Below are positions 22,706 through 64,000 of a DNA stretch of 64,000 bases, in pieces (positions within the stretch are counted from its first letter, which is position 1; each line of letters begins with the position of its first letter). Source of the stretch: Lepidodermella squamata (lineage: Eukaryota > Animalia > Gastrotricha). A program made the translations under genes and the position numbers. The notes beneath the pieces are model-generated. The model worked only from the letters and a program-made list of their open reading frames with translations. It made no database searches and had not been told where the DNA came from. The stretch is taken from assembly GCA_047495785.1 (NCBI GenBank), contig JBLDXI010000026.1:1116001-1180000 (forward strand). The letters run 5' to 3'.

Positions 22706-24865
22706 ATGAAGCTAATACTTTCAATCCTGGCAGTGCTAATTACGATATCTAACGTACTCGGTCAAGGGAAGCAGTGTACCTCTAATGAATGGAAATGTAA
22801 TAATGGACAATGCATACTGTAATCTCGAACTGTAAAGAAATATTGGAATTAATTGAATTTTTTTGTCGAAAATTAGGAATCAGTACCGATGTGATCGGGT
22901 TCCGGTAAGAAGAATTTTGCGAATTTTTCATTCTAATCTTAATTTATCGATTTTATCAGGATGACTGCGGTAATTATTAGAGTTGCTAATTATCGCCTCT
23001 TACCGGCTTGTTTTATTCAAAGACGATGGCAGCGACGAGCTGAACTGTCCCGCTAGGACAACGACCCAGAAACCAACGACTACGACACAGGCTTCAAGAC
23101 GTGGTCAAAGCTGTTCGGCTGGAAAGTTTCAATGCGTTAGCGACGGGAAGTGCATCGAGTAAAAAAGCTTATGGAAAATCGTTTTTTTTCTAATTGAAAA
23201 CAATTCCAGCTTGAGTCAATATTGCGATGGCGAGTTCGACGTTAGTTTAGTTTTCACAGAAATATTGGCTTAATTTCTTCTTTCTCTTTTTTTCAGGACT
23301 GTGGTAATTCGAATAGCCTTTTTTAAATCTCCACGTTCGAATTTTGAACTTGAAGCGGATCGCAGTGATGAAACAAATTGCGGAACAACGACGAAATCGA
23401 CAGCAGCAGCAGCAACAACTGCAGCCAGGCAGCAGCTATCAGCAACAACTGCAGCCAGGCAGCAGCTATCAGCTGTTCAGCCGGCTTGCGGCTCTTCGGG
23501 AAGCCCACGAATTTTCGGCGGCACGGAAGCAAATCCACATCAATTTCCGTGGCTTGTTCGCTTTACTGACATCAAATTCGGGTCTAGGTCCGCTGGGTTC
23601 TGCGACGGGGCCGTTATCAGCAATCAATGGGTTTTGACTGCAGCTCATTGCGTTGTCGATAAAGACAGCGGGATGCTAGCAACCAGGTTTGAATTCTTAT
23701 ATCTATTATTCTTTCTAAGATTTTCATCCACAACACAACACAATTTTATTTATCTGGCTGGGAGAAACGTCACTAATCTTCGGAATTTTTCCAAAAGTTT
23801 GAATAGGTTAGAAGTTGAGTTAATCTAATTTGGCTCGATTCTCAGTGCCAACTTAAACCCACAGCTCATTGAAATATTCGGGATACGAGAACAAACTCTT
23901 TTCTCCTCCAAGATTCGGACCTTGATGGTTTTCAGTTTTAGGTCATAGGCCATTGAGGGATATTGAACTATATAGAAATTGACGATTCTCCGTATGGGAT
24001 TATACCTTAATTTCCCGATGGATGCCACTCCTCAGACACTCCTTTTCAATTCTCGAACCCTTTTAAGAATTCAGAGCTTTGAACACGTTTTAGGGTTGAG
24101 TTAAGCTTCAAGCGCCACAATTTGACGAAAAGTTTCAAGGAAGAAGGTGGCGTTCTGCGGAATTCTGCTGTGATCATCAAGCATGAAGAATACTTTGGCA
24201 GAGGCCCATCCGAGGAGGGCTACTACTTCGACAACGACATAGCCTTAATCAAGATGGATGCTCCTGTTCAATACGAAGCTTGGCTCAGGCCGATTTGCCT
24301 ACCAAATGAGAGCATTTGCAACGCGGCGAATCCTGATAACGTCACTGCGATAGAGCAATGCAGTGATGTAATTGCGGCTGGCTGGGGAGGCTTTTTACTC
24401 AATCGTAAGTCGAATCCACTTAAGTCTCAGCTTATGCTTCTACTCTTCTTCTCAGGGGTTGTCCAGAGTCCTGTCCTAAAGTTTGCTGAGATGAAGGCGC
24501 GATCTCGACAGGATTGTTCAAGACACTGGAAACCTTCGAAGAATCAAGTTTGCGCGGGCAATGGAATGCCCTCAACCTGCGGCGCAAGTTTATCTGTCTG
24601 GCCATTTTTGCATTTAAATTAGTTTTTTGTCGATTTCAGGGTGATTCCGGGGGTCCTATTATGTGCGTGGTTAACAAAGTCTACTATGCTGTAGGAGTGG
24701 TTTCTTTCGGACACGATAATTGCGGGCAACCTGAATTTCCATCAGTCAGTTTACTTCTTATTTGAATAGTCATCTATTTCTACTAATCTCGTTCCATTTC
24801 AGTACTTCACGAGGGTCTGCTCATACCTAACTTGGATTAGGGAAGCCATGGCTCGATACCCATGA
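22706..24865 (+). CDS. SP1: signal peptide + 2 LDLa + Thr/Ala linker + S1A serine protease (triad intact)
   Basis: Spliced LDLa modules (...[25 protein letters not shown]), activation site PR|IFGG, TAAHC, NDIAL, STCGGDSGGP; stop at 24865. Confidence 0.88.
23411..23472 (+). repeat. 30-nt coding tandem duplication ([10 protein letters not shown] x2) in the SP1 linker
   Basis: CAGCAACAACTGCAGCCAGGCAGCAGCTAT repeated twice. Confidence 0.85.
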
Positions 24866-25273
24866 TGTTAATGAAAAATATACTCGAAACAGCGGTACAG
24901 CCGATTTAGACTTTTCTATTTTGATCACTCATAATAAAATTGATGCCAATGATTGTTATGGAAATCATACTCTGTCATGTCATGCCAGTAACATTTAACC
25001 GTAAACAATAAAATCGTGGGAGTAAGACGAGCATCTCGAAATGGAGGAATCTCAGATGGCTGGCAACCTCCGGCCTTTTCAGCCTTTCCAACAGATTAAG
25101 AAGATAAGTCTTTAGGCATTAATAAAATGCTTTCATGAAATCTGATAAAATGGCTGAACACGCTTCTTGGCTAAATCTGCCGTTGTAAGTCACTAGGACG
25201 AAAGCATTTTTTGCTTTCAGTGTGTGGAGTAGTAGTTGCGTTTATTTGCAGTTGAAGCTGACTTATTGATAGG

Positions 25274-27266
25274 ATGAGACTGTTGGCTCTACTTTTGGTG
25301 ACACTTGTTGTCACCTCTTCGGTTTCCTGTCAGGAACCAGACTCTCAAGCTGGTAACGAGCCAGGTGCACAGGCTGGGAATGAACCAGGAGCTCAAGCTG
25401 GGAATGAACCAGGAGCTCAAGGCTCAAGAGTGAGTTGATTTAACTCCCTCGATCCTCCCTCTAATTCATTGCTTCAAAGCGTGCCGGTTGTGGCCCAGGA
25501 AAATTCCAGTGCGACAATTTGGAATGCATCGAGTGAGAACAAGTTTTAAACGAGCTCATCTGTTTCCCATCGTTTTGTCGATCTTTAGGAGTAGCTTCAC
25601 CTGCGATGGAATAAATAACGTAAAAAGCCAAAATTTTGTCTAATTTTTCTCAATTTATGTAAAATACAGGATTGCCGTAAGATGAATGCGATCTAAAATA
25701 CTTGGCATTACCTATACATCCACCTTAAGGGGATAACAGCGACGAGCGATATTGCAACTCTGGAACAACGACTCGGGCAACTAGCACCACTACTAGGAGA
25801 ACTTCCACAAGATGCAACTCTAACCAATTTCAATGTACCAACGGATGGCAATGCATCCCGTAAGATCAAAGAAAATCGATTCAAAGTAATTCAAAATTAT
25901 ATCTATAGGCTCTCGCAAACTTGCGACGACTACGACGTAAGTTTTATAGTAGCAACAACTCGATATAAGATTCTAATCTATGGTAATTTCAGGATTGCGG
26001 TAAGGTATCACGACCGAAAATCAGAGATTAACTGAAGGAATTTGAATTAAGATGACCTCAGTGACGAGAAATTCTGTGTTACAACGACGAAATCGACTAC
26101 AACCACATCAAGAAGACCTGTTACAACTACAACAACGCGGAGGCCAGTGGCGGTAGGAGCAGCTGCGCCTTCTGGAAACGCATCTCCGATTGGACGATCA
26201 TCGAATCCGTCATCGAGCCCGGCGCAATCTTCTTCATCTGTTGGATGTGGCACCTTAGGCAGCCCAAGAATTTTCGGTGGTACGGAAGCTGAACCGCATC
26301 AGTTCCCATGGATTGTTCGTTTCAAATTTTGGTTCGGCACCAAGTTTGGAGGAAATTGCGATGGTTCGGTTATTAACAATCAATGGGTGCTCACAGCAGG
26401 TCATTGTATTTACGACGATGAGAAAACTCAAACAGTCGCAACAAAGTAAGACTAGGTTTTATTCACAATCATGTAACATTTTCCTCAACTAGTCTCGAGC
26501 TTCAATTCAAGCGCCACAATTTGACAAAAAGTCCCGAGGAAGAAGGCGGAATAATTAGAAGGAATGCCATGATAATCAAGCATGAAGATTACATCGGGAG
26601 GGGGCCTAATGCTGATGGCGTTTACTACGACAACGATATTGCCCTAATCAAGTTGGATGCTCCCGTTCAGTACGAGGCATGGTTGAGGCCAATATGTTTG
26701 CCCGATGATATTTGCAACACAGCGAACCCCGACGATGTTGCTAGGATAGAACAGTGTAATACTGTCACGGCGGCTGGCTGGGGTGGCTTTATTTACGGGC
26801 GTGAGTTTTTGGTCTTTCTGAGGTCTGAAGAATTAGAATAACTTTGCCTTTCAGAGGCAAGCAGGACTGCCAAACAAAGTCCCGTGCTTAAGGTTGCAGA
26901 CCTTCAAGCTCGGGCGAGAGATGATTGCTCCAAAAAGTACCTTTCATCAAAAAATCAGATTTGCGCTGGGAACGGCAATCCGGCAACCTGCGGTGTAAGT
27001 AGAGAAATAAACTTAACTCATATTACAAACAATTTCTTGATATTCAATTCTGCAGGGTGACTCTGGAGGTCCGATCATGTGCATGGTGAACAAGATCCAG
27101 TACCTCGTCGGCGCTGTGTCTTACGGTCCGTCGCAATGTGGATATCCCGAATACCCATCGGTAAGATTTATTCCTAAGATCCCTTGATATTCATGTGATT
27201 TTTTAGTTTTTCACGAGAATCTGTTCATACTTGCCATGGATCAGGAAGACCATTGCTAGCAACTAA
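25274..27266 (+). CDS. SP2: signal peptide + (QAGNEPGA)3 + 2 LDLa + S1A serine protease (triad intact)
   Basis: PR|IFGG, TAGHC, NDIAL, ATCGGDSGGP; same intron positions as SP1. Confidence 0.88.
25345..25420 (+). repeat. 24-nt coding tandem repeat (QAGNEPGA x3) at the SP2 N-terminus
   Basis: CAAGCTGGGAATGAACCAGGAGCT-like unit repeated three times. Confidence 0.85.
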
Positions 27267-27561
27267 AGAGCTTTATAAAGCGGCAACTAGTAGAAAAAAT
27301 GACTAACTAATGTTTGTTTTAAAGATAATTGGAATTCGAATTGTATCTTATTCTTGACGTTTCAACGTTGAATTACTCAGCGTTTTCAATAAAAACTGTC
27401 GTATATTATTTTATGACCGCTCTAACACCGGAATCGAGTTCGTGGCAGATTCGATGCTATTTTCCATCACTTCAAACTGCAGGTCGTACTGAAAAAGCCA
27501 TGACTCCGCGAAAAAGCGCTGATTTTTTTCTGTTCAAGCATCAAAATATAAGAGATAAGAG

Positions 27562-29724
27562 TGTGGCGAAGCCACCTGTTGATGAAATGGTTATTTGAAA
27601 TTGGCGGTCGACCTTGACCGAAATACTTGGAAGTTTATTGTACCGCCAAATGGCGAATGATGATTGGTCGAATCGTTGTATTTAAACCTTCTGTAAATAT
27701 TATATTGATGTCGAAGATCTCGGAGAATAAACTAGAGATCGTTAATAACGTGTTTTATTGTTGCCAGTAGAACTACTAGCCTTGGTCTTCTTACCACACT
27801 GGTGTCAGAAGTGACCGGAAGAAGAAGGTTCTGTTTCGAACTGCAGTGTGTTTAGCGCCTTGAGGGCGTTGGGGGCTCGGGTTGTACCGACGCCCGGCGT
27901 AATATGGTAACAGTTGCCTTGGTTGACATCCTGGCGCAATGGCTCGATTCAGCAGTTGAGGGTTTTGGCCAATGGAATCTGTGCGGAAGGCAAGCGATCG
28001 AAGACAACGAAATCGGCGAAATGGCTGCAACGACAGCGACAGTATGCTGTGAGCCGCGGCCTGGCATGGCGATGGTACGAACGCAACTGGGTGAGAAGAA
28101 TGTTCCGATGTTTCCGGTGAAGCTACGGCGAATGAGGAAGGTGAGGCTATCAGCTGTTCGCAAGATTGACTGGCCTGCTGAACCGATCAGACCGAAGGCG
28201 CGACGGATGGCAATGAAGCCGAGCCAAGTGAAGAACCCGCCAGCAAGGAAGCCGTTGCTATTTTTCGTCGTCAGTCGACCTCGTCGGAAAAAGAAACGCC
28301 GTAATGGTTCGTCGTGTGTCAAGTGCGGGAGCAGTATGGTATCGAAACGGTTCGAAACGATCGCAAGGTTCACGACTGTGTCTAGCGGCTGATTGGGCCG
28401 ATCAACCCGTTGAAGTCAAGCGGCAACGTCCTATGTCAGGTAATACATAAAGACTTGCTCTCTGTCCGAATGTGTGCCACCGGCCAAGTGTGATTGAGTA
28501 AATTGTTAAGCTTGAAACGTTCATTGAAGATTTTCTAACAAGGGAAGGTTTTTTTTTTCGATGAATGGCTGAGAAATTGATTGGCGTAAAAAAAAAAAAT
28601 ACGCACCATGATTTTTTATAGACTGGGACGCGTGTGTGAGCGTCGATATTTGTAATGGATGAATGAATGGATAGATCGTCACATCAAGTGAAGTGTTGGT
28701 TCTTGAATTATAAATTGTAATTGTTTATTTCGTTCTGCAAATGTTCTTCAAAATGGCTGTGACCTTGATTGTATCAATATGATGTGTAATTAGCAAATAG
28801 CTCTCATTACCATTGTAAATAGTCGAGCGAATCGTTCTTTCTCTTGTATACCTATTGTTGCTAAATGAATGAAACAACTCTGCTCTGCTCTATCCCTTTT
28901 CCTTGCGAGATTGTAATAAATGATATAACACTGATCTACCTTATCTATTTTCTCTCTCCAACCCTCTACCTTGCCCTTTGCAAAGTGACGTCTTGGCTCT
29001 CTCTAGTCTGTTATTCTTGCCTCGATATAATATTTTCCTTTGTGAGATAATGTACCTACGAAAGTAATATTCTCAAATCGATGGTCTAGTAATCGTTGGA
29101 AGTCATACGAAGTAGCGTTAACATTACGTTAAACAATTTTTTTTATTTTTATTTTGCCCGCTCGTTGATATTTACGATTCAGAATGTCGGTTGGGCGATG
29201 AGCCAGGCGGCCCGGTCCGGCTTCGATGGATGTCGCCGAGCCGAGGAAGCTTGGGGGTCGTCTCTTCTCGACCAGCGGGAACACGAGAAGTTTTTGAAGC
29301 CCTAGTGGCGATTATTACCAATGAATAAACGTTTGCCTTTCAGATCATCGAGATCGCTGTTCTGAGTTGTAGATAATCTTATCCTAATCTTGTCTTGAAC
29401 TTCTGTCTTGGTCTTGTCTCCTTCTCTCGCTGGTACCTTATACCTTATACCTTTTATCTGTTTCGTGAAACCGAAAGGTGGGAGGAGTGTGGCGAAGCCA
29501 CCTGTTGATGAAATGGTTATTTGAAATTGGCGGTCGACCTTGACCGAAATACTTGGAAGTTTATTGTACCGCCAAATGGCGAATGATGATTGGTCGAATC
29601 GTTGTATTTAAACCTTCTGTAAATATTATATTGATGTCGAAGATCTCGGAGAATAAACTAGAGATCGTTAATAACGTGTTTTATTGTTGCCAGTAGAACT
29701 ACTAGCCTTGGTCTTCTCGCCACA
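27562..29724 (+). mobile_element. Non-autonomous LTR retroelement (2163 bp, Ty3/gypsy-type cis signals)
   Basis: 237-bp LTRs at 27562-27798 and 29488-29724 (TG...CA, 235/237 identical). 5-bp TSD AAGAG at 27557-27561 and 29725-29729. PBS TGGTGTCAGAAGTG (tRNA-Leu complement) at 27800. Polypurine tract GAAAGGTGGGAGGAG before the 3' LTR. No gag/pol. Confidence 0.93.
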
Positions 29725-30024: not shown

Positions 30025-32211
30025 ATGGGATTATCATCGAATCTGAGTTTCCTGTATTTTTCATATATCTTCATCCTTGCTATTGATCCAACAAATGAAC
30101 AAGCTGATGGAGTAAGCAATCTTCCTCATCCAAAATCAAAGTTATAGAATATTGCCCGATAAGCAGGCTGGAGAATATTGTCTTCATCAGTTCAAATGCA
30201 GCGACATGACATGTATTCCGTATGAATGATGACTATAATTGTGATTGAAAGGTGACTTCTTTTCTCCTTTCCCACCAGGCTAGACCTTAAATGCGATGGC
30301 ATACATGTAAATTGAATCATATAAATTACCTGTAAACTAACCAAGCTTTCCCTATAGGATTGCAGTAAGAATTGATGCCATAAACCTGTTCACGTATAAC
30401 CCTAAGTTTATCCGAGGAAGAAGATGAGAGTGATGAATGGAACTGCGATGAAACGACCCCGCAGGCAGCAGCCAGAAGACAATGTCAGTCGAATGAATTT
30501 GCATGCAACAATGGAGAGTGTATCAAGTATAAGTTCACAAATCTTGCAACCGGCCTTGAATAACCTAAAATGGCTTTCTTCAACAGCAAGTTTTTCAAAT
30601 GCGATGGCTTAGAAGTAATAAAACTATTTTACCAGTAAATTCAGTCTAGATAATTTGTTAACTTTACAGGACTGCAGTAAGTGGTAACCCTAATAATCGA
30701 ATAATCGTCGAACCATACTATCGCAGTCGATCGAAGCGATGAGCTTAACTGCCCATCCACCTCAACAACTAGAAAGCCCACGCAAGCGACGCGGAGGCCG
30801 ACTACGACAAAATGCCCCATCAACATGTTCCAATGTATTAGCGATGGAGTTTGCATCGAGTAAGTCTTTGCAATCAACAGTATATGGGAGGTCTTAATAA
30901 TTTGCATATTAAAGTCGTAGCCAGTATTGCGACGGATACTTCGACGTAAGCTCAAAAAGATACCTACCATCATGTGCGCGATTACTTATTTTCAAATGAA
31001 CAGGACTGTGGTAAGACCTACTATTGATAGCTCTCGATTTTTGAACATTCCTGAGTCGAAAAGCGGACGCTAGCGACGAAAGAAACTGCACATCCACTAC
31101 GACGCCTAAATCAGTAGCCACACAAAGAAGGCAATTATCTCTCACCGCTCTCGCCGGGACATGTGGAACGATTGCCTCTTCGCGCATTTTCGGCGGAACA
31201 GAGGCCGAACCACATCAATTTCCGTGGATGGTTCGATTTTGGGTGAAATTTGGGGCAAAACCAAGTCGCGGCGTTTGTGATGGAGCTCTCATCAACAGTC
31301 AGTGGGTTTTGACGGCAGCGCATTGCGTCTACGAGGAGAAGCTGCAAATCGTCGCTTCTGAGTATACCTCAAACCTAACAGCCACGACTTTTTAAGCAAT
31401 TTTTGTATGTAGCGTCGAACTCCATTTCAAGCGGCACAACATTACTAAAACCCTCCAAGATGAACGGGGATTGAGTAGAGCAGCTCAGGTGGTCGTCAAG
31501 CATGAAAACTACACAGGCCAAACACCTGATCTGAATGACGACTCTGGCATATATTACGCAAATGACATCGCATTAATCAAGCTCAGCGAGCCCGTGCAAT
31601 TCGAGCCTTGGCTGAAGCCGATCTGTTTGCCAGACGAAAACATCTGCGACTCGGAAAATGCAGATGACGTCGCAACGGTAGAGCGTTGTAGCACAGTAAC
31701 TGTAGCCGGCTGGGGTGGATTTGCGTATGGCCGTGAGTTAGCGAGTTTTAAAATCAAGAAGTGTTTGCCAATAACAAAATTTCCCAGAGAAAAATCAAAG
31801 TCAGGTTTTGAGAATAGCTGAAATGAAGGTTCGATCCAGAGTCGATTGTGAGAATCACTGGGGCATTTCGCAAAATCAAGTTTGTGCAGGCTATGGAAAC
31901 CCATCGACCTGTAGCGTGAGCAACTTGAGCAAATTCGCGCTATTATTTTTTGCATTCTCCCTAATTAATCCTAAAGATATTCTTTGTTTAGGGAGATTCA
32001 GGCGGTCCAATGATGTGCGCTGTGGACAAGATATACTACGCAGTTGGTGCCATCTCTTTCGGGGCACCTAACTGCGGCGAATATGGATTTCCCACGGTAC
32101 TCATATTTGTGATTATTCGATTACTCTAAAATTTTCCATTGCTACCAGTACTTCACCCGGATTTGTTCTTATCTTCCTTGGATTCGACTAACAATGGATC
32201 GCAATTCGTGA
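30025..32211 (+). CDS. SP3: signal peptide + 3 LDLa + S1A serine protease (triad intact)
   Basis: SR|IFGG, TAAHC, NDIAL, STCSGDSGGP; micro-exons at 30358, 30670 and 31004. Confidence 0.85.
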
Positions 32212-32569: not shown

Positions 32570-34794
32570 ATGGTACAATTATCAGTGACAATTCTAATCA
32601 TCGCATTTATTGGTTTCCCCACAATGAATGCCGATGACTATGTAGACAGTATAACTACTACAACCCTAAGCCCCGATACAGTAACATTCAACAGAACTAG
32701 ATGGACAAGAAGCCCTTCTTCCACTCGGCCAATAAGGAGGCGTAACGCTACGACTTTGGATCGAGATTCGACAACAACTAGGGCTGCGAGAATTCGAGCC
32801 CTTGTAGCAGCCCAAGCTGGGGTTGATCCCGTTGCACAAGCTGGAGGGGTAAAATCTTGCCGCTATCCATTGCAGAAACTAAAAGGGCTTTAATTAGGAT
32901 GGAGATTACTGTCCTGGGCAATTTCAATGCAACAATTACGCATGTGTTCCGTATGAGTAACACATTTCTTACTAAACAATATTCATAATAGTTACCATAG
33001 GAAGGAATACCAATGCGATGGCTACTCTGACTGCCGTAAGAAGAAATGATTGTTCCGCAATTTTCTATAATCTCTACCTTAAAATAATAGGCGACAACAG
33101 TGATGAATGGAACTGTGCAGTTAAAACGAATCCCACAACTAAAGCAACATTCAAAAGGAAGCAGTGCGCACCCAGTGAATTTACATGCTTGGATGGAGGG
33201 TGTGTACGGTTAGTTGTTCAGTCCCTATACCTAGAAACATTATAAAAGTATCCTGTATCATTACTCAGGATGGAATACAAATGCGATTCTTACGATGTAA
33301 GTTGTATTTAAATTCAAGGAATGGTTTTTTAACTGCTCTTTGTTCCTATTAGGACTGTGGTAAGAATTCTGAGACTGAATGCCATTTCGATCTATTGTAT
33401 ACTCATATAACAGACGATTCAAGCGACGAAATGAACTGCAGATCTGCTCCTAAATTACAGAGCTGTGCGTCAAACGAGTTCAGCTGCAACAGTGGCGAAT
33501 GCATTCCGTAAGATTTTCAGCAGTCAACTCTCATGATAACTTGAATGATTAACATTTCAGAATTGATTACAAATGCGATACGTATGATGTAGGTAATCAA
33601 TCTATCCCTGAGGAATAACACTACATTTTATTATTATTTAGGACTGTGGTATGATGTTCCTTAATAGCAATGGAAATTTAACTACCTGTGTCTGAATAGC
33701 GGACTCAAGTGATGAAATGAATTGCAAAACAACTACGACTACGACAACGAAGCGGCCACCGACCACTCAAGCATCCTTTGGAGCTTGCGGCTTCGTGCAG
33801 TTCCAACGTGTGATAGGAGGCACAGAGGCAGACCCACATCAATTTCCATGGATGGTGCGAATGTTCGTTAAATTTGGCACGAAGCCAGGAAGATCGACAT
33901 GCGACGGCGCCCTCATTAACAATCAATGGGTTTTAACAGCGTCTCATTGCATTTATGAATTTGAGACTGGGTTGCAGGCTACTAGGTTTGTTCAACACCT
34001 GAAAATCATTCAGGAAAAATTATCTCAACATTTCTAGCGTGGAGTTGCATTTGAGGCGACATGATATGAGCTTAGATATTAGCGCCGACGGTGGTGTATT
34101 AAGAACGGCCCAAGTTGTGATTAAACACGAGAATTACGTCGGCAAAACTGCGACATCATCTTACGACAACGACATTGCGTTAATCAAGCTCAATTCTCCG
34201 GTTCAATTCGACACATGGCTGCGGCCAGTTTGCTTGCCGAATGAATCGATTTGCGATTCGGTCAATTCTGACAATACGGTTACGGTGGAAAAATGCGTTG
34301 GGAATGTTACCGTTGCAGGGTGGGGTGGTTTTCAGTACAACAGTAAGTTATAAGATTTTCAAAGACCTCACTCAATCTCCCTGGTTTCTTCATCCTCAGA
34401 CAAGGCAGCTAGTACCGTTTTACGAGTTGCTGATCTGCCGGTCCGATCGAGGGCTGATTGCTCTGACACTTGGCAATTGACAAAGAACCAAGTCTGCGCA
34501 GGCTATGGAAACCCTGGAACATGTGGGGTGAGAACCTCAAATGCATTTTTCATCTCTTCAGGAGTTTGTTAACAGGGTGATTCCGGAGGTCCAGTGTTTT
34601 GTTTAATCAACAAGCAATACATCACCGTTGGGGCAGTTTCCTTTGGATCGCCGATTTGCGGTGATTCAGATCGGCCTTCGGTAACTTAGAAGTTAAACTA
34701 TCGTCACTGATGCCTAAAAATCGACAACTTTCAGGTTTTCACGCGGGTCTGTTCCTACCTGTCATGGATTCGTCAGAAAATGGCGCAAAATTAA
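32570..34794 (+). CDS. SP4: signal peptide + Thr/Arg-rich N-terminus + 3 LDLa + S1A serine protease (triad intact)
   Basis: QR|VIGG, TASHC, NDIAL, GTCGGDSGGP; TATA-like TATAAAA at ~32509. Confidence 0.87.
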
Positions 34795-35125
34795 CTGCTA
34801 GTTGAAATCGTCTAGAATTATACCAGTGAAAACTATCTAATGAATAAATTTTATAGCAGCCAAAAAACTTTAATTGTCCGAGCATGATCATACGCGCATT
34901 CCAGACAATTAGGTTATTCGCAGTGCTCTCGAGTGTTCCATGTTCCATAGTAACATGGCACTTTTTATACAACAACGAAATAACACATAGCATTAGGGTC
35001 ATTGAGGAAACAATAGCATAACAGGCTGCGTAGGAAACGACATGGATGTTAATTGCTTGGTCACGCTCGACTTGCGGCACCGTCTCGTGTCGCGCTAGCG
35101 TGACCTTATGGGACAATTCCGGTGA

Positions 35126-36118: not shown

Positions 36119-36418
36119 ATGGTGTAGTAATTAATGCGTTGAATTGGCATTGTTATTGTTATTCTTTCTCTTTGCATAACCGGTGAGAGGGTTTTGCGTA
36201 GTTTTTCATTTTGGTAGTAATTTTTTCTCGCTAAATGCTGTTTACAATGCACATCTTTTAAGTAAAAAATACAGTTTAGCCTACGCTTCAAGGGTCGTGA
36301 CATCTCCAAAGTTCTACAACTGTCTTTGAGTAAGTACGATGATGTTTTTTAATTATGCGCACGCCTTGGTGTCTATAAAGTGTAAAATGCCACCAGCTTT
36401 CTGTATAACAACGCCAAA

Positions 36419-49420: not shown

Positions 49421-49451
49421 GTAGTTTTCAAAATTTCATCTTAGAAGAAAG

Positions 49452-52035
49452 ATGCGCACGTACACTGGGCTCCTCCTGGTCGTCCTCTTGGCTCCTGCCG
49501 TTGTAAGCTTGTCTGAAACTAGGTGCGCCTTCTCTTTAAAAGAGTTTTCGGTTAGTTTGGGCAAGACGACAGTGATTTTGGCGATTGGAACGGTGGTGAT
49601 ACCGGAAGTCCAAGCAGCAATAACGGCGGTGGATCAAGGGGTCGATGCTCTGGGTTCACCTGTGGTGATGGGGCCTGCATAGAAGCGTCTTGGAAGTATG
49701 ACTATTGCCATTCGCAGACCAATTTAATACATATATATTTTTCCTCGCCTAGGTGCGATGGGGACGCAGACTGCAGTAAGAATAATCAGTCTTTCTCAAT
49801 ATTCAAACTTCTATTACGAATTTCGCTAGACGACGGAAGTGATGAGCGCAATTGCAACGGTCCTCTTCCGCCGGGCACCTTCGGACGAGAAGTACGCATC
49901 ATCACAAAAAGCTCCTAATTCCAACTGTATTTTGCTGTTTTTGTTTCAATTTCCAGTCTACATGCACGGGTTTCTCATGCAACAACGGGCGCTGTATCTC
50001 CGCTGACTATGTGTGAGTTCAATTTGTAATATGGTTTTCAAAGCTAAAAAGGAATGTTATAGGTGCGACAATGATGATGACTGCGGTTTGTCTTAGCAAT
50101 TTGCAACTCGAATTCGTAATAGAAGCATTATTCTTACAGATGACGGTAGCGACGAAGCCAACTGTGCAGCTGCCACTACTCCTAAACAGGCACAATGCGG
50201 ACGGGGCGAATTCAAGTGCAACAATGGCAGGTGTATAACAGGCTCCTATCTGTAAGAATATCAGAATGCTAAGATGTGGAATTAATTTGCCCTTATTTTT
50301 TAGTTGTGACGGTGACAATGACTGCGGTGAGTATCCTTAACGATATCAGTGATATCCGACCCATGTTCATCTTGGTTTAGGTGATCGAAGCGATGAAAGA
50401 AACTGCAGAGCTACAACTACAACACCAGTAAGTAGAACCTTACAAATCGGTGATCTGCAGAAATTAACTGAACTTTCCAAGGCTGGATGTGACGGGTTCA
50501 CCTGCAACAATGGAAACTGCGTTAGTTCGTCATATGTGTAAGTTGGGAAATCGGATTCATTCATGGCAGCCGTCAAAGATTCATTTTCTAATTTTTAGCT
50601 GCGATGGGGATGACGATTGCCGCAAGTTTCAATTATTTCTACCGGAATGTTATTTATTAATCGATATTCTAAATGAGCAGGCGATGGAAGCGATGAGAGA
50701 AACTGCCCCGGTTCAAACGGGAGAGTGAGTTATATAATTTATTGAACTGGCTGCAGCGGTATCACATTCAATACTTTGTTCCCAAGGCCAACAGTTGCGA
50801 CGGCTTTACATGCATGAATGGCAATTGCATTCAATCGAGCTATGTGTAGGTTTCCAATCAAAATTACAGTTTTTCCTTAATCCAATGTGATCACCTTAGT
50901 TGTGATGGCGACGACGATTGTGGTAAATCATCATGAATGAATCTTTATATGCCATAAAGTTCTGGCCCATAAATGCCAGGTGACAGAAGTGACGAAATCA
51001 TCTGCCGAGGAGCGGTAATTATAGCCTTTCTTGCCGAAATCGTATAGGCTAATAATTATCTTATAGGCTCCACAGACAACACGAACGACAACTCGACCAA
51101 CAACTAGACCGACAACTCGGACGACGACGCCACCAAGAGCTGCCCCAGCCCCCGCTCGAGCCTCGGCTCCGTCTCCTCCTCAGGCACCTCTACCCCCTGC
51201 TGGAAGTTGCGGCTTGACTAGTTCGAGCACCATGGCAGCAGTTGGTGCCCATCCTTGGATGGTTCGAATGGAAATGAAGTTCACAACAACCCCAGCTGGA
51301 CGTATCGTAATCTGCGGAGGGGCTTTGATTTCCGATCAATGGATCCTTACTGCTGCTCATTGCGTTACCGACGAAAAGGGTGGGAAAATTACTGATGTTG
51401 TGGTCCGTCTTGGCAGGAATGATCTCTCCCAGAAAAGCGAGCGAGGAGCTTATGACCTGGCCGCAACTCAGGTTTTCAAACATCCTAGCTACGATGCCAA
51501 CAACAAATGGTTTATGGATTTTGCGCTGGTGAAACTTCGGTCGAAAGCAGCCTTCTCCAGAACAATCCAACCAATTTGCTTGCCTGAGGGTTTGTGCAAT
51601 GCCACGATTCAGGAAACAGCAGCGTTTGCTGATAGTTGCAGGGAAGCTGTCGTTGCTGGCTGGGGAGTTTCAGACGGTAAACATCTTTGGATCTTGAATA
51701 TTGATTTTTGAATACTGTTTGTATCCTTCTTAGATGATCCCAGCCCCGACCAGCTGCTGGAAGTAGCAGTTCGCATCAATCCTCGTCAGCAATGTGATGA
51801 CAAGTATGGCCGACTATCGACTGCCCAAATATGCGCTGGAGACGGAACACGAGGCACCTGTCGAGGCGACAACGGTAGCCCGTTGATGTGCAAGCAGAGT
51901 TCGACTGGCCGTACTCATATCATTGGTGTTGTGTCTTGGGGCTACGTGGAGTGCGGAAAAAATGGTTATCCCTCTGTATTCGCTCGCGTCTGTACTGCCT
52001 TGCCATGGCTTAAGGAAATTATGGCTAATAATTGA
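49452..52035 (+). CDS. SP8: signal peptide + 5 LDLa + serine protease homologue (activation site deleted, Ser195->Asn)
   Basis: Reading frame intact; SST-MAAVG lacks GRIFGGT; TAAHC and MDFAL retained; GDNGSP. Confidence 0.82.
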
Positions 52036-53656: not shown

Positions 53657-56343
53657 ATGCGAACCTACTCTGTGCTCCTCCTGGTCATCTTGGTGGCTCC
53701 AGCTGTTGTAAGTATCACTGAAACTGGGCCACATCTTCTTTCAAACATTTCTTGTTTAGTTTGGGCAAGATGAACAAAGCACTGATAATCCCGGTGATAA
53801 TAACGGTGGTAATAACGGTGGTAACATAGAAAGTCAAGGCAGCTACGGCTTTGATTCATGGCTTCGATGCCCAGGATTTTTCCCCTGTGATGATGGGTTA
53901 TGCGTTCCTATGCCTTGGAGGTAATACGATGCCGTGCATTCAAAATATATAATTAAATGTTGGCTCTTTCCCGTCTTAGATGCGATGGACAGCGGAACTG
54001 CGGTAGGGATAATTTAGAATTTTTGAAGTTCCTTCTTCCATCATCTTTTTTTATCGCAGGCGATGGAAGTGACGAACGCAATTGCAATAGGGGTCGCCCT
54101 CCAAGCCCCTCCGGGCGTGATGTAATGGCTCGCTATTTATCCTTTATATCACCTTTTCTTGTTTTGTTTCCTAGCCTACTTGCACAGGTTTCGCTTGCAA
54201 CAACGGTCGATGTATCTCACCTGACTATGTGTGAGTTCAGCTCATGAAAAATGATATTCTAAATTAATTAGGAATATTTCAGCTGTGACAATGAGGATGA
54301 CTGCGGTAAATGCATTTTAGCAATTCATAATTCGAAGTTGACGTCTTCTTACAGAGGACGGTAGCGATGAAGCCAACTGTGGAAGTGGTACCACTCCTAG
54401 ACCGGTATGATTTGAAAATCGCTGCTTACTGTGACTTTGATTAAGCCGATTCAAGGCACAATGCGGACGAGGCGAGTTCATGTGCAACAACGCCAAGTGT
54501 ATATCTAGCTCCTATGTGTAAGAACCCGCGTAGCAGATGTACATTAAATCAACGTTACCCTTCTTTTCCAGCTGCGATGGTGACAATGACTGCGGTGAGT
54601 ACGATGTACCATTGTTACGTTGACTCAAATCGGTGAAAACCATCTTCCTCCAGGTGATCGAAGTGACGAGAGAAACTGCCAAAGCAGAACAACATCAAGA
54701 ACAACAACAAAAACAACAACAAGACCAACAACAACAACAACAACAGTAAGTGCAATCTACTGGATTTTTAATCCGTAATAACTGCCAATTTTGTTAAGGC
54801 TAGTTCCTGCGATGATTTCACATGTTACAATGGAAACTGCGTTAATTCGCGATATGTGTAAAAATGATAACATTTGCCTTCGGCAGCTTTATTAATGACA
54901 TTTTCATGCTATCATTTCTAGATGCGATGGCGAGGATGATTGCCGCAAGTTTCTTGTATTTACAGTAAAACGCGATGTTATTATTAGTCATGAGCAGGTG
55001 ATGGAAGCGATGAGCAAAACTGCCGCGGCTCAACCGGAACAGTGAGTTATAATTGATCGAATTAGACTCAACGGTAACAAATTCAATACTTCTAAAACTT
55101 CCTCAAGGTCGACAGTTGCGACGGCTTTACATGCAGGAATGGTGATTGCACTCAATCGAGAAATGTGTAGGTTTACCATCAAAATTACAGTTCAACAATT
55201 TATCAAATTTTATCTCATTAGCTGTGACGGCTACAACGACTGTGGTAAATCAACATAAATAATTTTATTATTGGCCCTAAAGTTCTGGCGCCTTTAATTC
55301 CAGCCGACGGCAGTGACGAAATCAGCTGCAGGGTAATTATAGCCTTTCCTGCCGAAATCGGGTTGACTAATAATTTAAATCTTACGCACTGCAGACAACA
55401 ACTCAACCAACAACTCGACCAACAACTCGACCAAGAGCTGCGCCGGCACCTGCACCAGCTCCGGCTCCATCTCCTTCCCAGTCACCTTCGCCCTCTGCTG
55501 GAAGTTGCGGCTTGACTGGTTCGAGCACTGGCCGAATTTTCGGTGGCACCGTGGCCGCAGTTGGCGCTCATCCTTGGGTAGTTCGAATGGAAATGAAATT
55601 CACAACAACCCCAGCCGGCCGTATCATAATATGCGGAGGGGCTCTGATTGCTGACCAATGGATCCTTACAGCCTCTCATTGCGTCACCGACGAAAGCGGT
55701 GGGAAGATTACTGAAGTTCTGGCCCGCCTTGGCCGCAACGATCTTTCTCAGCGTAGCGAGCGAGGAGCTTATGACCTGACCGGAACTCAAGTGTTCAAAC
55801 ATCCTAGCTACGACCCCGAAAACAAATGGTTTATGGATTTTGCTCTCGTTAAACTTCGGTCGAAAGCAACGTTCTCCAGAACAGTTCAGCCGATTTGCCT
55901 GCCCGATGCTTTGTGTAACAGCACAATTTCTGCTTCAGCGGCTTATGCCGATAGCTGCACTGAAGCTGTCGTTGCTGGCTGGGGAATTTCTGACAGTACT
56001 TTCACAATTCTGAGATGCCAAATATTTACTATCTGTTTTAGATGATCCAAGTCCCGACCAACTCCTAGAAGTAGCAGTTGGTATCAATCCTCGTCAACGA
56101 TGTGACGACAAGTATGGTAGACTTTCAACTGCCCAGATTTGCGTTGGAGACGGAACACAAGGCACCTGTCGAGGCGACAGCGGCGGCCCGTTGATGTGCA
56201 AGCAGGGTCCTACCGGCCGTACTCATATCATTGGTGTTGTGTCTTGGGGCTACAAAGACTGCGGAGTGAATGGCTATCCATCTGTATTTGCACGCGTTTG
56301 TTCCGCCCTGTCGTGGATCAAGGAAACCATGGCTAGTAATTGA
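53657..56343 (+). CDS. SP9: signal peptide + 5 LDLa + S1A serine protease (triad intact)
   Basis: GR|IFGG, TASHC, MDFAL, GTCRGDSGGP; stop at 56343. Confidence 0.87.
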
Positions 56344-57645: not shown

Positions 57646-60339
57646 ATGCGTATCTACACTGTGCTCCTCCTGGTCGTCTTGGTGGTACCAGCCGTTGTAG
57701 GCATCTCTGCGAAATCAGACCTAATATTGTTTTATAATATTTCTTGGTTAGTTTGGGCAAGATGAACAAGGCAGTGATAATACCGGCAATGATAACGGTG
57801 GTAATAACGTCGAAAGTCAAAGCAGCTACAGCGTTGGTTCAAGGTTTCTTCGATGCCTTGGGTTCACCTGTGGTGATGGGCAATGCATTGCTGTAACTTG
57901 GAGGTGAAGCAATCATGAGCATTTGGGGAATAATTAAATTTAGCCTCTTTCCTGTCTTAGATGCGATGGAGACGAGGACTGCAGTAGGAATAATTTGGAA
58001 TTTCTGAAGTGCTATCTTCCATCGATTGTTTATTAGGCGATGGAAGTGACGAACGCAACTGCAATAGGGGTCGCCCTCCAAGCCCCTCCGGGCGTGATGT
58101 AATGGCTCGCTATTTATCCTTTATATCACCTGATCTTGTTTTGTTTCCAAGCCTTCTTGCACAGGTTTCGCTTGCAACAACGGTCGGTGTATCTCAGCTG
58201 ACTATGTGTGAGTTCAGCTCATGAAAAATGTAATTCTAAATTAATTAGGAATATTTCAGCTGTGACAAAGACGATGACTGCGGTATAAGCATTAGCAATT
58301 CATAAATTCGAAGTTGACGTCTTCTTACAGAGGACGGTAGCGATGAAGCTAGCTGTGCAAGCGGTACCACTCCTAGACCGGTATGATTTGAAAATCGCTG
58401 CTAACTGCGAATTTTATTAAACCGATTCAAGGCACAATGCGGACGAGGCGAGTTCGCGTGCAACAACGCCAAATGTATACCAAGCTCTTATGTGTAAGAA
58501 AACGCATAACATAGAATAGATTGAATCACCATTTACCATTCTTTTACAGCTGCGATGGTGACAATGATTGCGGTGATTATAATTGTTACGCTGAGTCAAC
58601 TGCGTGAAAATAAGCTTATTCTAGGTGATCGAAGTGATGAGAGAAACTGCCCAAGCAGGACAACAACTACTACAACAACTACAGTAAGTACAATAAATTT
58701 GCTGGAATGCTGATCCGTAATAATTGCCAATTTACTAAAGGATAGCGGTTGTGATGGTTTCACTTGCAACAATGGAAACTGCGTCATCTCGCGATATGTG
58801 TAAATTGGGAAAATTTTCCTTCGAAAGCTTTTTTAATGCTCCAATTTTTAGATGCGATGGCGACGATGATTGCCGCAAGTTTCTTGTATTTGCAGTAAAA
58901 CGTGATTTTAATATTAGTCATGAGCAGGTGATGGAAGCGATGAAAGAAATTGCCCCGGGTCAACCGGAAGAGTGAGTTATTACAGATTGAAATAGTTTCA
59001 GCTGTATACGCAATTAAAAAATTTGAAAATCCAGAGCCGCACCACAACTGTAATAGTGAGTGAAACAATTGTTAGATGTGGCGGTACCAAAACTTTGAAC
59101 ATTTTCCGAAGGCGAACAGATGCGACGGCTTTACCTGCAGGAATGGCAATTGCATTCAATCGAGCTATGCGTATGTTTCTAATTGAAATTAGATAAAAAA
59201 CATCATGATTCAATGCAATTATCTCAGCTGCGATGGTGACAACGATTGTGGTAAGTAGATGTAAAATATAAGTGTGCCGTGAGTTATGACATCCAACTTC
59301 AGGTGATGGCAGTGATGAAGCTAGCTGCAACGCGGTAATTAGTAACTACATTTCTGAATTCATGTAAATAATTTTACCGTAGCCCCAGACAACCAGACCG
59401 ACAACTCGACCAACGACGCCGCCAAGAGCTGCCCCTGCACCAGCCCCGGCACCATCTCCTTCGCCGTCTCCTTCGCCGTCTTCCTCCGCAGCAAGTTGCG
59501 GCTTAGTTGGTTCGAGCACTGGCCGTATTTTCGGCGGCACGGCGGCCGCAGTTGGCGCGCATCCTTGGGTGGTTCGAATGGAAATGAAATTCACTACAAC
59601 CCCAGCCGGCCGTATCATAATATGCGGGGGGGCTCTGATTTCTGACCAATGGATCCTTACAGCCTCTCATTGCGTCACCGACGAAAGCGGTGGGAAGATT
59701 ACTGAAGTTCTGGCCCGCCTTGGCCGCAACGATCTTTCTCAGCGTAGCGAGCGAGGAGCTTATGACCTGGCCGGGACTCAAGTGTTCAAACATCCTAGCT
59801 ACGATGCAAAAAACAAATGGTTTATGGATTTTGCGCTCGTTAAACTTCGGTCGAAAGCAACGTTCTCCAGAACAGTTCAGCCGATTTGCCTGCCCGATGC
59901 TTTGTGTAACAGCACAATTTCTGCTTCAGCGGCTTATGCTGATAGCTGCACTGAAGCAGTTGTCGCTGGCTGGGGAATTTCTAACGGTATACTTCTCGAA
60001 TAGTAAAATCCTAAATAATTGCTAGTGTCTGTTTCAGATGATCCTAGCCCCGATCAACTGTTAGAAGTAGCAGTTGGAATCAATCCTCGTCAACGTTGCG
60101 ACGACAAGTATGGCCGACTTTCAACTGCCCACATATGCGTTGGAGACGGAACGCGAGGCACCTGTCGAGGCGACAGCGGTGGCCCGTTGATGTGCAAGCA
60201 GGGTCCTACCGGCCGTACTCATATTATTGGTGTCGTGTCGTTTGGCTATACAGAGTGCGGTGTTAATGGCTTTCCCTCTGTATTTGCGCGCGTTTGTTCC
60301 GCTCTGCCGTGGATCAAGGAAACCATGGCTAATAATTGA
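57646..60339 (+). CDS. SP10: signal peptide + 5 LDLa + S1A serine protease (triad intact)
   Basis: GR|IFGG, TASHC, MDFAL, GTCRGDSGGP; protease exon nearly identical to SP9; extra 15-nt linker exon (SRTTT) at ~59035. Confidence 0.87.
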
Positions 60340-61107: not shown

Positions 61108-64000
61108 ATGTTTTTCATAAAAAAGCTCCTTCTGTTAGGGCTGATTACTGGCGCTGTCGTTGTAAGAAAACATAAATTTAAGTGGGCCATCAAAAACCAA
61201 TTTCTTCATTCAGGATGGGCAGGAAAACGGAGATAATGCAAGTGTCGAAAGACGAGGTCCATGTTCTGGGTTCACTTGTGGGGATGGGAACTGTATATCA
61301 AGACTTTGGAGGTGACACATTTGCCACTTTTGATCAGCCATCATACCAAAACTATACACACTACACACTACACTATAAACACTATAACACTCAGCTAATT
61401 TGCCTGATTCCCTCGCAAATTTCGCCATGTAGAAACACAATGGCAAGATGTTTCTCCACGGAAACAATTTGACTGAGCAGCAATTGCCTACCTCAAATCT
61501 TATACCACGTGAAAGAGGAGCTCGCGTTCTATGTGCATGCTAAGTTTGGTAAATAACGGAGATATCCGTTTTGAGAAGCACTCGATTCAATAATGCAGAT
61601 CAAAGTTTTAGCTTGAGTGTGGTCGCTTTTTTCTCTACGGTCTAGCCATAGAGTATTCCCTTATTCCCACATGCCCACAATCCTGAGCCACTTTTTGTTA
61701 TTCATTATTCTTTATTTTCAAGGTGCGACGGAGACATAGACTGCAGTATGGAATTAATGCGAACTTATCAGAAAACGATGCTCAAACCTATTTTCACCAG
61801 GGGATAGGAGCGATGAAGTCAATTGTGATTCCTATAAACCTAACAGCTCTGGCCCCGATGTATGTTCGCATCGTTCTTATCAATTCGTTATGATTACCTT
61901 GTATTTTAAATACAAGCCCCTTTGTAAAGACGTTCCGTGCAACAACGGACGATGTATATCAGGCAACTTCATTTGCGACAGAATAGATGATTGCGGTGAG
62001 TTCAAGCACTTTAACGATTATTACTCCAAACAATGTCTCTTAGGGGATGGCAGCGACGAAGCAATCTGTGGTGGAAGACCTGAGTTTCATAACGTAAGAT
62101 CAGCAGCGATTTACAGGGTGTCCCATAAGAAACGCAAGCAAAGAAAATACACGGAAAAGGGATCAGAAACTCTAAAATGAGAGACGAAGTCACATCTCAT
62201 GGCGAGAATAATAATTAAGTATGTTGATGGGATTAGAAACGTCCGAAGAAATTTGGTTCAACAGGGTAAAATACCGAAAATTACCAAACCGGTTACCATC
62301 GGGGTTTTCTGGAAATTCTTCAGCAAATGTTTTTATTCCTTCGGTTAAATCGCGGCTAAAATATGGAATACTCTCTCAGCAGGTTTAATTTGAATAATTA
62401 GTTGAATTTCCTAAAAAAAAGTTGTTAGATTAAAAAATGATGCGCAACTTTTGGGACACGCTGAATAATGAGTTTAGGTATTTGCGCTTTTATTTTTGCA
62501 TGTAATAAAGAGTACGTGTGGCAGTAACGAATTCAGATGCGACAACGGCAGATGCATAACAAGCAATTATATGTATGAATTCAAAACATTGCTTATTACG
62601 GTAATCCCAATAATATTTCAATGCAGCTGCGACAGCGATAATGACTGCGGTTAGTTTATCTCGGTTACAACCATTTCAACTCTCCACATTCGAATGTTCT
62701 ATCTGTAGTTTTGAGGCTCTTGTATTGAATTCCGAAGAGCTCCGCAGAGCATATGTCAATTTTAAGTTTAGTTTATGTAAATTGAATGATTTTACCGATA
62801 TCGTCTAGCCGAGTAGCAATCATCAAAAATGTCATGAAAGCATGAAAGCTATACAGGGCCTAGCGCCTAGCTGTCTGAAAAGTGTCTCATTCATCCATAA
62901 CTCAAATTACATTTTTTGTCGGAGCCTTAAATTGGAGGTTGTGAGATATAGTTAAGTACCTATTGCTTAAGGTGATCAAAGCGACGAAATAAACTGCGCG
63001 AGCCACCAGCCAACACCTACAGCACAAGTAAGACCGATAATTTCCATGATAGGTAATATAAATAACACATTTCCAATTTGGATATTCAGCACGCAACACA
63101 GGAGAAAGAAACTCTAGCGGTCCTGGCAAAGTCAACTGAAACAAACGCTTTCGATTTGCCCAATCAAGCGGCTCCAATATCTACCTCGCATCCCTTTTCT
63201 GACCCTTCTATTTCAACTTCCATCGTTGGTTGTGGCTTGATCAATTCCAGTGCGGACAGCGTTGTCGGTGGAAATGTGCAAGCCATTAATCCTCTCCCTT
63301 GGGTGGCTTCCCTGTATTTTGAGGATGGTAGAGTGGACTGCTACGGGGCACTGATTTCTGATCAATGGATCCTTACTGCTGCCGAATGTGTTAGGGACAC
63401 GAAACGTCCCGGAAAAGTAACCATAGTGTTGGCAAGTCTTGGCCGCAAAGAGCAGTCTTTAAATGTGCGAGATGCTTACGACATGTACGGCGTTAGGAAA
63501 TTCTCACATCCTATGTTCTTATGGGGTTCAGGGAAAATGAATTTCGCGCTTATCAAGCTTCGTTCGAAAGTCTCATTTTCTAGCAGAGTACAGCCGATAT
63601 GCCTGCCTGATGCATCAATGTGTGATAACATCTCCAACTCTGAAAGAATGGCAAAAGTCGATGACTGCACAGTAGCTACCATGGCTATAAGAGGTAGGCA
63701 GTTAACTTTTCGTTGCAGATGTTTGATATTTTTGATTTTTTCATTCTTTTTGAGATTTTTATTGATTTTTATTGATGATTTTTGCATGGAATTTTTCCTC
63801 AGATATAGAAAATGCCCAGATATTGGCTGCTGTCAACGTAACCGATCGGCTGAGTTGTAATGACCTAAGATACCTGCCATTGTCGATAGCCCACATATGC
63901 GTCCGTGGACCGGAAAACCTACGCGACGCAGCCCTCGACGGTGGTCCACTTATTTGTAAGCAGCGCCTGACTGGCCGAGCTCATGTGATAGGCATTTTTT
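61108..64000 (+). CDS. SP11: signal peptide + 3 LDLa + serine protease homologue with all three triad residues replaced (3' end beyond the window)
   Basis: [18 protein letters not shown]; DS-VVGG; TAAEC (His->Glu), MNFAL (Asp->Asn), ALDGGP (Ser->Asp). Confidence 0.75.
62114..62463 (+). mobile_element. Tc1/mariner-like MITE (350 bp) in an SP11 intron
   Basis: TA|CAGGGTGTCCCA ... TGGGACACGCTG inverted termini; a second diverged copy lies at 18494-18845. Confidence 0.75.

Follow-up and report, generated by a model that had tools for sequence, protein, structure and literature searches.

The locus described here raises the question whether an array of protease genes lying side by side can form a cascade of its own. 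Cascades driven by mosaic serine proteases and their dead homologues underlie clotting, complement and insect immunity. The array occupies positions 22706-64000 of a 64,000-nucleotide stretch of DNA from the gastrotrich Lepidodermella squamata (assembly GCA_047495785.1, contig JBLDXI010000026.1, named C26 below, positions 1,116,001 to 1,180,000 of the forward strand), called hereafter the window, and all coordinates without a contig name are window coordinates. An earlier reading of these letters alone, without database searches (the sequence-only reading), had proposed a self-contained extracellular cascade, in which the members would activate one another, with LDLa/CCP proteases serving as sensors and effectors, pseudoproteases as cofactors and LDLa-only proteins as decoys. 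Our analysis leads to a different answer: the locus is probably a lineage-specific, tandemly duplicated cluster of secreted mosaic S1A proteins of non-tryptic type, with activators encoded elsewhere.

Spliced models place 13 genes on the + strand of 22706-64000, 11 of them with an S1A protease-like domain. Six are LDLa-proteases with an intact catalytic triad (SP1-4, SP9 and SP10), one is a module-less protease (SP5) and one a CCP2-protease (SP6); the remainder are three dead copies (SP7, SP8 and SP11) and two LDLa-only genes (L1 and L2). The 13 co-oriented genes in 41 kb first reported, with their numbers of proteases, pseudoproteases and LDLa-only genes, were thus reproduced by the models and the alignment. 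Classes and counts of the earlier gene list were kept, and its entries were corrected to eight LDLa modules for L2, a decayed middle and 5-6 modules for L1, and an atypical activation site, R↓TYGA, for SP6 (the arrow marks the cut). A catalytic-motif scan, stop-to-stop frames, Pfam and tblastn with curated domains agreed on the 11 S1A domains, all on the + strand between 22.7 and 64 kb; the motif scan and tblastn found no such domain in 1-22.7 kb of the window or on its - strand. Genome-wide, a first look gave 643 S1A candidates in 121 Mb (151 contigs), about one per 190 kb, so that the local density, 11 domains in 41 kb, is roughly 50-fold over the genome average.

Splicing of SP1 was first read by hand, and that of the other genes by a purpose-written dynamic-programming splice finder, which scored codons by log-odds and splice sites by trained donor and acceptor matrices, allowed GT/GC-AG introns and gave a bonus to frames homologous to paralogues; its output was hand-curated against the paralogue alignment. 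Introns of this genome are very short, and Pfam, library and structure searches were made with single-exon pieces. Pfam Trypsin was found across the window protease domains with E values of 1e-11 to 4e-52, the 8 exon pieces tested with PF00089 all scored 44.6-177.8 bits (cut-off 20.6), and 344 PDB sequences match SP5 at E<=1e-20. Sushi (PF00084, cut-off 20.7) scored 30.7 bits on SP6 and 25.7 bits on SP7, one module per gene passing; the second CCP-like module of each was read from its Cys/Trp pattern. LDLa modules were counted per gene with a PROSITE-like pattern, which served as a lead, Pfam on single exons being the actual test. By the pattern, each spliced LDLa-bearing model holds 2-8 six-Cys modules with a D-x-S-D-E calcium cage; Ldl_recept_a (PF00057, cut-off 24.1) gave 28.5 bits on a single SP8 exon piece (50097-50252), and 52.5 and 38.2 bits on unspliced LDLa modules just outside the window. 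CLIP (PF12032) had no match on the exons tested, and the N-terminal regions consist of LDLa or CCP modules and linkers, so that these are not clip proteases; no recognition module other than LDLa and CCP was found in the locus genes. The N-termini of all genes are short and hydrophobic, the signal peptides of SP3 and SP7 being weak calls.

A cascade closed within the locus would need at least one member whose S1 pocket suits the P1 residue of another member's activation site. Residue states and activation sites were taken from the protease-domain alignment, and the register of the chymotrypsin numbering was checked against plasma kallikrein, in which Asp189 and Gly226 stand opposite a Gly and a Ser of SP5. 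His57, Asp102 and Ser195 are present in SP1-6, SP9 and SP10, and also in SP12 and SP13, which lie outside the window; the triad is broken in SP7 (S195G), SP8 (S195N) and SP11 (H57E/D102N/S195G). P1 is Arg or Lys in 8/8 activatable zymogens of the window (SP1-6, SP9 and SP10). Residue 189 of the same eight is, in that order, S/A/S/G/G/K/G/G, residue 216 is Gly except for a Ser in SP5 and SP6, and residue 226 is Ser or Thr; in the alignment Asp189 is absent from every window member. Trypsin-like enzymes, which have Asp189, cut Arg/Lys-P1 zymogens, and Ser/Thr189-Gly216-Gly/Ala/Ser226 is the chymotrypsin-like combination (PMC10036332). With Arg or Lys at P1 and no Asp189 in the window, no window member should activate another, and, as far as specificity can be predicted from pocket residues, a self-contained cascade within the window is not supported.

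Enzymes of the missing type are encoded elsewhere in the genome: trypsin-like paralogues of the same own-genome clade (Asp189, Gly226, K/R↓I-x-G-G) sit on contigs C54 (one of them at 2.45-2.46 Mb), C36, C42, C78 and C17. One subclade, made of SP12, SP13 and the paralogues L024 and L025, has a conserved N↓IYGG site, with Asn at P1 instead of Arg/Lys. These sites point to a different activating enzyme, which would be Asn-specific or chymotrypsin-like. The sole possible internal step might be the cutting of N↓IYGG in SP12, SP13, L024 and L025 by a non-tryptic neighbour or an Asn-specific enzyme.

The history of the array was inspected in a tree built by maximum likelihood from the extended locus (13 domains), 19 paralogues from the same genome (stitched from high-scoring segment pairs, stops masked) and 11 foreign proteins from a word search. 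All own-genome rows except L029 form one clade (support 96/92) that excludes the 11 foreign proteins. Within it, SP1-4 form clade A (100/100), SP5-7 clade B1 (95/89), and SP8-13 clade B2 (100/100) together with L024 and L025 from C26:860-867 kb; between these three clades lie branches of paralogues from other contigs. Clade A was found only at this locus, the next best genome match being 41% identical. On the evidence of this tree, the array is three juxtaposed sub-arrays (SP1-4, SP5-7 and SP8-11), each grown by tandem duplication inside a dispersed family.

LDLa-proteases of the same own-genome family number at least six outside the window. LDLa pieces lie upstream of the protease domains of L007 (C60), of L008 and L012 (C26:1.01 Mb, duplicated on C127) and of L024/L025, so that in this part of the family LDLa(n)-protease is the form that is widespread. 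The LDLa-protease paralogues of C127:7160-17910 have E-values and identities equal to those of C26:1011239-1017599; either a haplotype was left uncollapsed here or a segment was duplicated very recently.

Taken together, the pocket residues and the tree make it very unlikely that the locus encodes a closed cascade. The genes are indeed co-oriented and dense, L2, SP8, SP9 and SP10 have transcripts in one and the same RNA run, purifying selection maintains the dead copies (both below), and the Asn P1 of SP12 and SP13 is one that a non-tryptic neighbour might cut. However, all eight window zymogens require a cut after Arg or Lys that no Asp189 member could supply, the tryptic paralogues are encoded on other contigs, the sub-arrays are separate clades of a dispersed family with further LDLa-proteases outside the window, and modules for recognition are limited to LDLa and CCP. 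On these grounds the self-contained character proposed by the sequence-only reading is not supported. Its other proposal, that the architectures arose here by domain swapping rather than inheritance, held in part. Within one own-genome clade, SP5, which has no module, and SP6 and SP7, which have two CCP modules each, arise among lineages that carry LDLa, and identity to library proteins reaches 39% at most. The placement of SP5-7 fits a loss or replacement of LDLa exons.

The exon structure of the modules would permit such changes. In L2 and in clade B2, a module consists of three exons: exon A (phase 0 to 2), of 56-65 nt, with 65 nt in L2, or longer where it includes a linker; exon B (phase 2 to 1), of 23 or 26 nt, for the stretch C-D-G-x-x-D-C; and exon C, which goes from phase 1 to phase 0. 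With this phase pattern, whole modules can be gained, lost or skipped in frame. The 23- or 26-nt C-D-G-x-x-D-C exon is found in L1, L2 and SP8-13. Clade A modules are cut otherwise: their first intron lies earlier, an extra intron isolates a 7- or 10-nt Asp-Cys exon, and exon C is fused to the first exon of the following module, so that only the phase-1 intron after Asp-Cys is common to the clade A and L2/B2 patterns. The Asp-Cys micro-exons of SP1-4, all on the + strand and 7 nt long except for one of 10 nt, are at 22960-22969, 23297-23303, 25670-25676, 25993-25999, 30358-30364, 30670-30676, 31004-31010, 33353-33359 and 33642-33648; the first module of SP4 is an exception, its Asp-Cys lying inside a 35-nt exon. 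L1 and L2 are positioned between the B1 and B2 sub-arrays, and the similarity of their LDLa modules to the others (L to B2 119.7 versus L to A 104.7) is too weak to place their origin. The shared exon-phase pattern is a better clue to it than the similarity scores.

The first sub-array consists of four LDLa-proteases on the + strand. SP1 (22706-24865) encodes a signal peptide, two LDLa modules and a protease with intact triad, R↓IFGG and Ser189, as found by manual splice reading, the dynamic-programming models and Pfam Trypsin; it has 11 exons, including micro-exons of 10 and 7 nt, and one GC-AG intron (24584-24639, donor GCAAGT), just before the GDSGGP exon, where SP2 has a GT donor. SP2 (25274-27266) has a signal peptide, a short repeat region, two LDLa modules, a Thr-rich linker and a protease with TAGHC, intact triad, R↓IFGG and Ala189. 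In SP3 (30025-32211), whose start codon and signal are uncertain, two complete LDLa modules and an incomplete N-terminal one precede a protease with intact triad, R↓IFGG and Ser189. SP4 (32570-34794) has a signal peptide, a long linker, three LDLa modules and a protease with TASHC, intact triad, R↓VIGG and Gly189. Between SP2 and SP3, two 240-nt direct repeats (27559-27798 and 29485-29724), 99-100% identical and 1926 nt apart, enclose about 1.7 kb; open reading frames within this segment (e.g. 27852-28392) have no Pfam match, and it looks like a young insertion of long terminal repeat (LTR) type or another repeat-flanked one.

The second sub-array, also on the + strand, holds the forms lacking LDLa. 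SP5 (35126-36118; two exons) encodes a signal peptide, a Thr-rich linker and a module-less protease with intact triad, K↓IFGG, Gly189 and Ser226 (Pfam Trypsin 3.5e-52). SP6 (36419-38090) encodes a signal peptide, two CCP modules, a Pro-rich linker and a protease with intact triad (Sushi 4.2e-7, and Trypsin). Its Lys189 codon is at 37917-37919 and the new N-terminus, T-Y-G-A, is atypical; if active, this enzyme might prefer acidic P1 residues. SP7 (38562-40242) has two CCP modules and a protease homologue (Sushi 1.5e-5, and Trypsin), in which Ser195 is replaced and no canonical activation site is present.

Two LDLa-only genes follow on the same strand. L2 (45129-48091) encodes, in 29 exons, a signal peptide and eight LDLa modules with Thr-rich linkers, as given by the model and RNA contigs; the model contains no protease domain and no membrane anchor. 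Its paralogue L1 (40587-43474) was analysed by blastn against L2 and by inspection of frames. The decayed middle of L1 (41584-42526) is without counterparts of two L2 modules, one orphan first exon being kept, and in another module the donor is gone and the C-D-G..D-C exon is degenerate. As all modules run from phase 0 to 0, an L1 transcript that skips the remnants would still yield an in-frame protein; modelled in this way, L1 has 5-6 usable modules.

The third sub-array, again on the + strand, begins with SP8 (49452-52035), a transcribed gene with 17/17 exons intact, which encodes a signal peptide, five LDLa modules and a protease homologue with Asn at 195 and a deletion of eight residues including RIFGG. 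SP9 (53657-56343) has a signal peptide, five LDLa modules, a Pro/Thr linker and a protease with intact triad, R↓IFGG, Gly189 and Ser226. SP10 (57646-60339) likewise has a signal peptide, five LDLa modules, a linker and a protease with intact triad, R↓IFGG and Gly189; its protease domain is 94% identical to that of SP9. SP11 starts at 61108, reaches the window end at 64000 and continues to 64089, 89 bases past it; it encodes a signal peptide, three LDLa modules and a protease homologue that has lost the entire triad and the Cys191-Cys220 pair and has no basic P1 residue. Between L2 and SP8, at 48300-48900, the depth of contigs from a DNA run (X2) rises 4-8 fold and several divergent contigs are found; the segment looks like a dispersed repeat.

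Transcription was examined in two RNA runs, X1 and X3, recognised as such because their contigs are spliced; those of X2 pass through introns and intergenic sequence, hence its identification as a DNA run. The RNA runs are small (22-118 million letters) and were used as assembled contigs. For L2, nine GT..AG joints in the X1 and X3 contigs equal the model exon borders, exactly or within the ambiguity stated by the tool. A 12-nt exon (46352-46363) and a 15-nt exon (47102-47116) of this gene are present as inserted letters in RNA contigs, and the 23-nt exons were confirmed by RNA joints; the 7-nt exons of SP1-4 fall outside the RNA cover. In the RNA contigs the last exon of L2 passes its own stop codon (48089-48091) into a 3' untranslated region of at least 150 nt, so that L2 is truly LDLa-only. 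Splicing of L2 onto SP8 was considered as well and is ruled out, since the RNA runs past the L2 stop and SP8 has its own signal peptide. Loose ends or inserted letters of X1 contigs matched the spliced models of SP9 over 30/30 bases, of SP10 over 40/40 twice and of SP8 over 16/16 twice (neighbouring exons); for L1 there was a near match of 28/30 bases to a loose end. L2, the dead copy SP8, SP9 and SP10 are therefore transcribed in one sample at least. Among sampled words of 35000-40400, the SP5-7 region, 55% were found in X1 and 21% in X3.

Are the dead copies and the LDLa-only genes then pseudogenes or duplication fragments, with much of the array decaying? L1 has lost a splice donor and has one degenerate exon, SP8 is without an activation site, SP11 lacks the whole triad and one disulfide, and the LTR-like insertion has entered between SP2 and SP3. 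However, frames stay open and splice sites are preserved over 3 exons in SP7, 17 in SP8 and 11 in SP11, and L2 and SP8 are transcribed and correctly spliced, L2 with its own stop codon and 3' untranslated region. Ratios of nonsynonymous to synonymous divergence (dN/dS, by Nei-Gojobori) were 0.11-0.37 for all measurable pairs, with 0.18-0.25 for SP8 versus SP9 and SP10, about 0.19 for SP11 versus SP9, where dS is saturated, and 0.37 each for the L1/L2 and SP12/SP13 pairs. A three-taxon split gave dN 0.107 and dS 0.512 on the SP8 branch, i.e. a dN/dS of about 0.21, next to 0.22 for the active pair SP9/SP10. By these ratios and intact frames, SP7, SP8 and SP11 are maintained serine protease homologues under purifying selection and not decaying genes, and we give hardly any credence to general decay.

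The array is not a closed unit. All 13 genes reported earlier are present in it, but the extent first given does not hold, as SP11 ends beyond the window and the cluster goes on for about 16 kb, with two inverted LDLa-proteases and two CCP-LDLa-only genes; the whole cluster amounts to some 17 genes over about 57 kb and is itself part of the dispersed family. On the + strand at about 64466-66279 there is a protease-less gene for a signal peptide, a CCP and three LDLa modules, and a second gene of this kind is at 78579-79664 (+), followed by a retroelement-like open reading frame as the last feature. SP12 (71759-69444, about four modules) and SP13 (77452-73961, seven modules) are the inverted LDLa-proteases, on the - strand. 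Some LDLa modules of both CCP-LDLa3 genes are unspliced, unlike those of the array. Two single-exon genes resembling class-C G-protein-coupled receptors (GPCRs), paralogues of each other and both with an ANF_receptor match, flank the protease cluster: one at 9685-12054 (+), whose protein has no relative at E<=1e-10 in a word-based protein search, the other at 66876-69221, with a further match to 7tm_3 just under the cut-off. That the first CCP-LDLa gene past the window could be the N-terminus of this second receptor-like gene is ruled out, the receptor frame having a signal-like start of its own.

How could the products work? We propose that the active members are secreted zymogens, each activated by a single cut at R/K↓I(F/V)GG that a trypsin-like enzyme from outside the locus would make. 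All members have a Cys 12-14 residues ahead of the cut and another, at position 122, in the conserved motif I-C-L-P. If chymotrypsinogen and mosaic proteases are a guide, these two would form a bond of the chymotrypsin Cys1-Cys122 type, and the LDLa/CCP chain would stay tied to the catalytic chain. The combination of Ser/Ala/Gly189, Gly216 and Ser/Thr226 predicts cleavage after non-basic residues, as in chymotrypsin- or elastase-like enzymes, which the Ca2+-binding LDLa modules may aim at extracellular ligands. For the dead copies SP7, SP8 and SP11 and for the LDLa-only proteins, the most likely role is that of scaffolds or competitors that bind these same ligands. The different architectures would result from duplication and from loss or replacement of phase-compatible module exons, rather than from inheritance from ModSP, factor I or MASP.

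The same pockets are also those expected if the genes were simply a battery of secretory, digestive-type or gland proteases, multiplied for dosage or substrate breadth and without regulatory interplay. Such a battery would account for the tandem near-identical copies, such as SP9 and SP10, and for the presence of L2 and SP8-10 contigs and of words of 35000-40400 in small RNA runs, which suggests fairly high expression. But digestive S1 proteases are normally single-domain, whereas long LDLa/CCP chains and the tethering propeptide Cys are conserved here under selection, and three conserved dead copies and four module-only genes are ill-suited to a simple digestive role. This explanation is unlikely in our opinion. 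It is doubtful, too, that the locus forms the downstream, ligand-targeted tier of a lineage-specific network, with the Asp189 paralogues upstream and the Asn-P1 subgroup (SP12, SP13, L024 and L025) as a further tier cut by non-tryptic members. If true, such a tiered network would have evolved independently and be analogous to the ModSP/clip cascades of arthropods or to those of complement.

Several points weigh against our reading of a non-tryptic cluster activated from elsewhere. Specificity is predicted from three pocket residues alone, and a pocket with Gly189 or Ala189 departs from the classical chymotrypsin type, and its behaviour could differ. Autoactivation, or an activating enzyme that is not of the S1 family, is possible as well. 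The outgroup of the tree consists of the 11 foreign proteins, with ModSP, factor I, MASP and haptoglobin by name not among its rows. The start and signal of SP3, the signal of SP7 and the coding status of L1 are uncertain, and the RNA evidence consists of assembled contigs of two small runs that cover directly only 45100-51099.

The locus was finally compared with known families. An exhaustive HMMER search of 1.84 billion representatives returned 54,303 relatives, and the best 150 of them, mostly multi-domain polyproteases, are at most 39% identical; a word search with the main exon of SP6 found at most 38% identity and no LDLa-carrying match. The closest solved structures are those of plasma kallikrein, factor XI, Drosophila Grass, chymotrypsin, neuropsin and TMPRSS (E 1e-34 to 1e-28), and no complement protease, factor I or haptoglobin was among the best 60 solved-structure matches. 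In the literature we found only general accounts of LDLa/CCP serine proteases (insects, schistosomes, remipedes) and nothing on this family. These identities (<=39%), and the lack of any gene that joins LDLa, CCP and protease, favour a lineage-specific mosaic set, as the sequence-only reading had also suggested, and one that probably does not consist of orthologues of ModSP, factor I, MASP or haptoglobin.

Within a single lineage, tandem duplication and the loss or replacement of phase-compatible module exons have built mosaic architectures, and the locus is a clear, partly RNA-verified case of this. One small region holds LDLa(2-5)-proteases, a CCP2-protease, a bare protease, selected dead copies and module-only genes, and lends itself to studies of exon shuffling that involve sub-module micro-exons. 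It also yields a prediction, that of non-tryptic enzymes dependent on an outside tryptic activator.

With Drosophila ModSP, Manduca HP14 and Tenebrio MSP, the genes share secretion, several N-terminal LDLa modules before the S1A domain and the lack of a clip domain, and dead protease homologues occur in the same networks as these insect proteins (PMC10036332). ModSP and HP14 have the single-chain architecture S-4/5 LDLa-CCP-(Wonton)-PD, where S is the signal and PD the protease domain (PMC10036332 Table 2), whereas no gene combines LDLa, CCP and protease here, which sets the locus apart from them. SP6, as CCP-CCP-protease, recalls C1r/C1s/MASP, and SP7, as CCP-CCP-dead protease, recalls haptoglobin with its CCP and dead protease. 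However, SP6 and SP7 are without CUB or EGF, Pfam on their main exons giving Sushi and Trypsin only, and are not members of the C1r/C1s/MASP group; they also differ from that group and haptoglobin by a Pro/Thr-rich linker of about 75-100 residues between the second CCP and the protease, and their domains group with SP5 and own-genome paralogues. TMPRSS, matriptase, corin, enteropeptidase and factor I likewise have an LDLa heavy chain, disulfide-linked to an S1A light chain after one cut following Arg/Lys, but they are trypsin-like with Asp189 and carry a transmembrane segment, SRCR, CUB, Fz or FIMAC, whereas the LDLa-proteases of the locus start with a signal-like peptide, bear no module but LDLa and have pockets of non-tryptic type. 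Arthropod tandem arrays of serine proteases and their homologues resemble the locus as large S1A families with many tandem members (71/177 genes in one arthropod set; PMC10036332) and a sizeable dead fraction. The insect families are mostly trypsin-like and single- or clip-domain, unlike the present clade, which is LDLa-bearing and non-tryptic as a whole and has module-only paralogues in its array. On present evidence the locus is no new kind of system but a lineage-specific variant of known mosaic S1A proteases and their homologues. It has in common with all these systems a generic logic, in which a heavy chain for binding stays attached to a zymogen light chain and dead homologues accompany the active forms.

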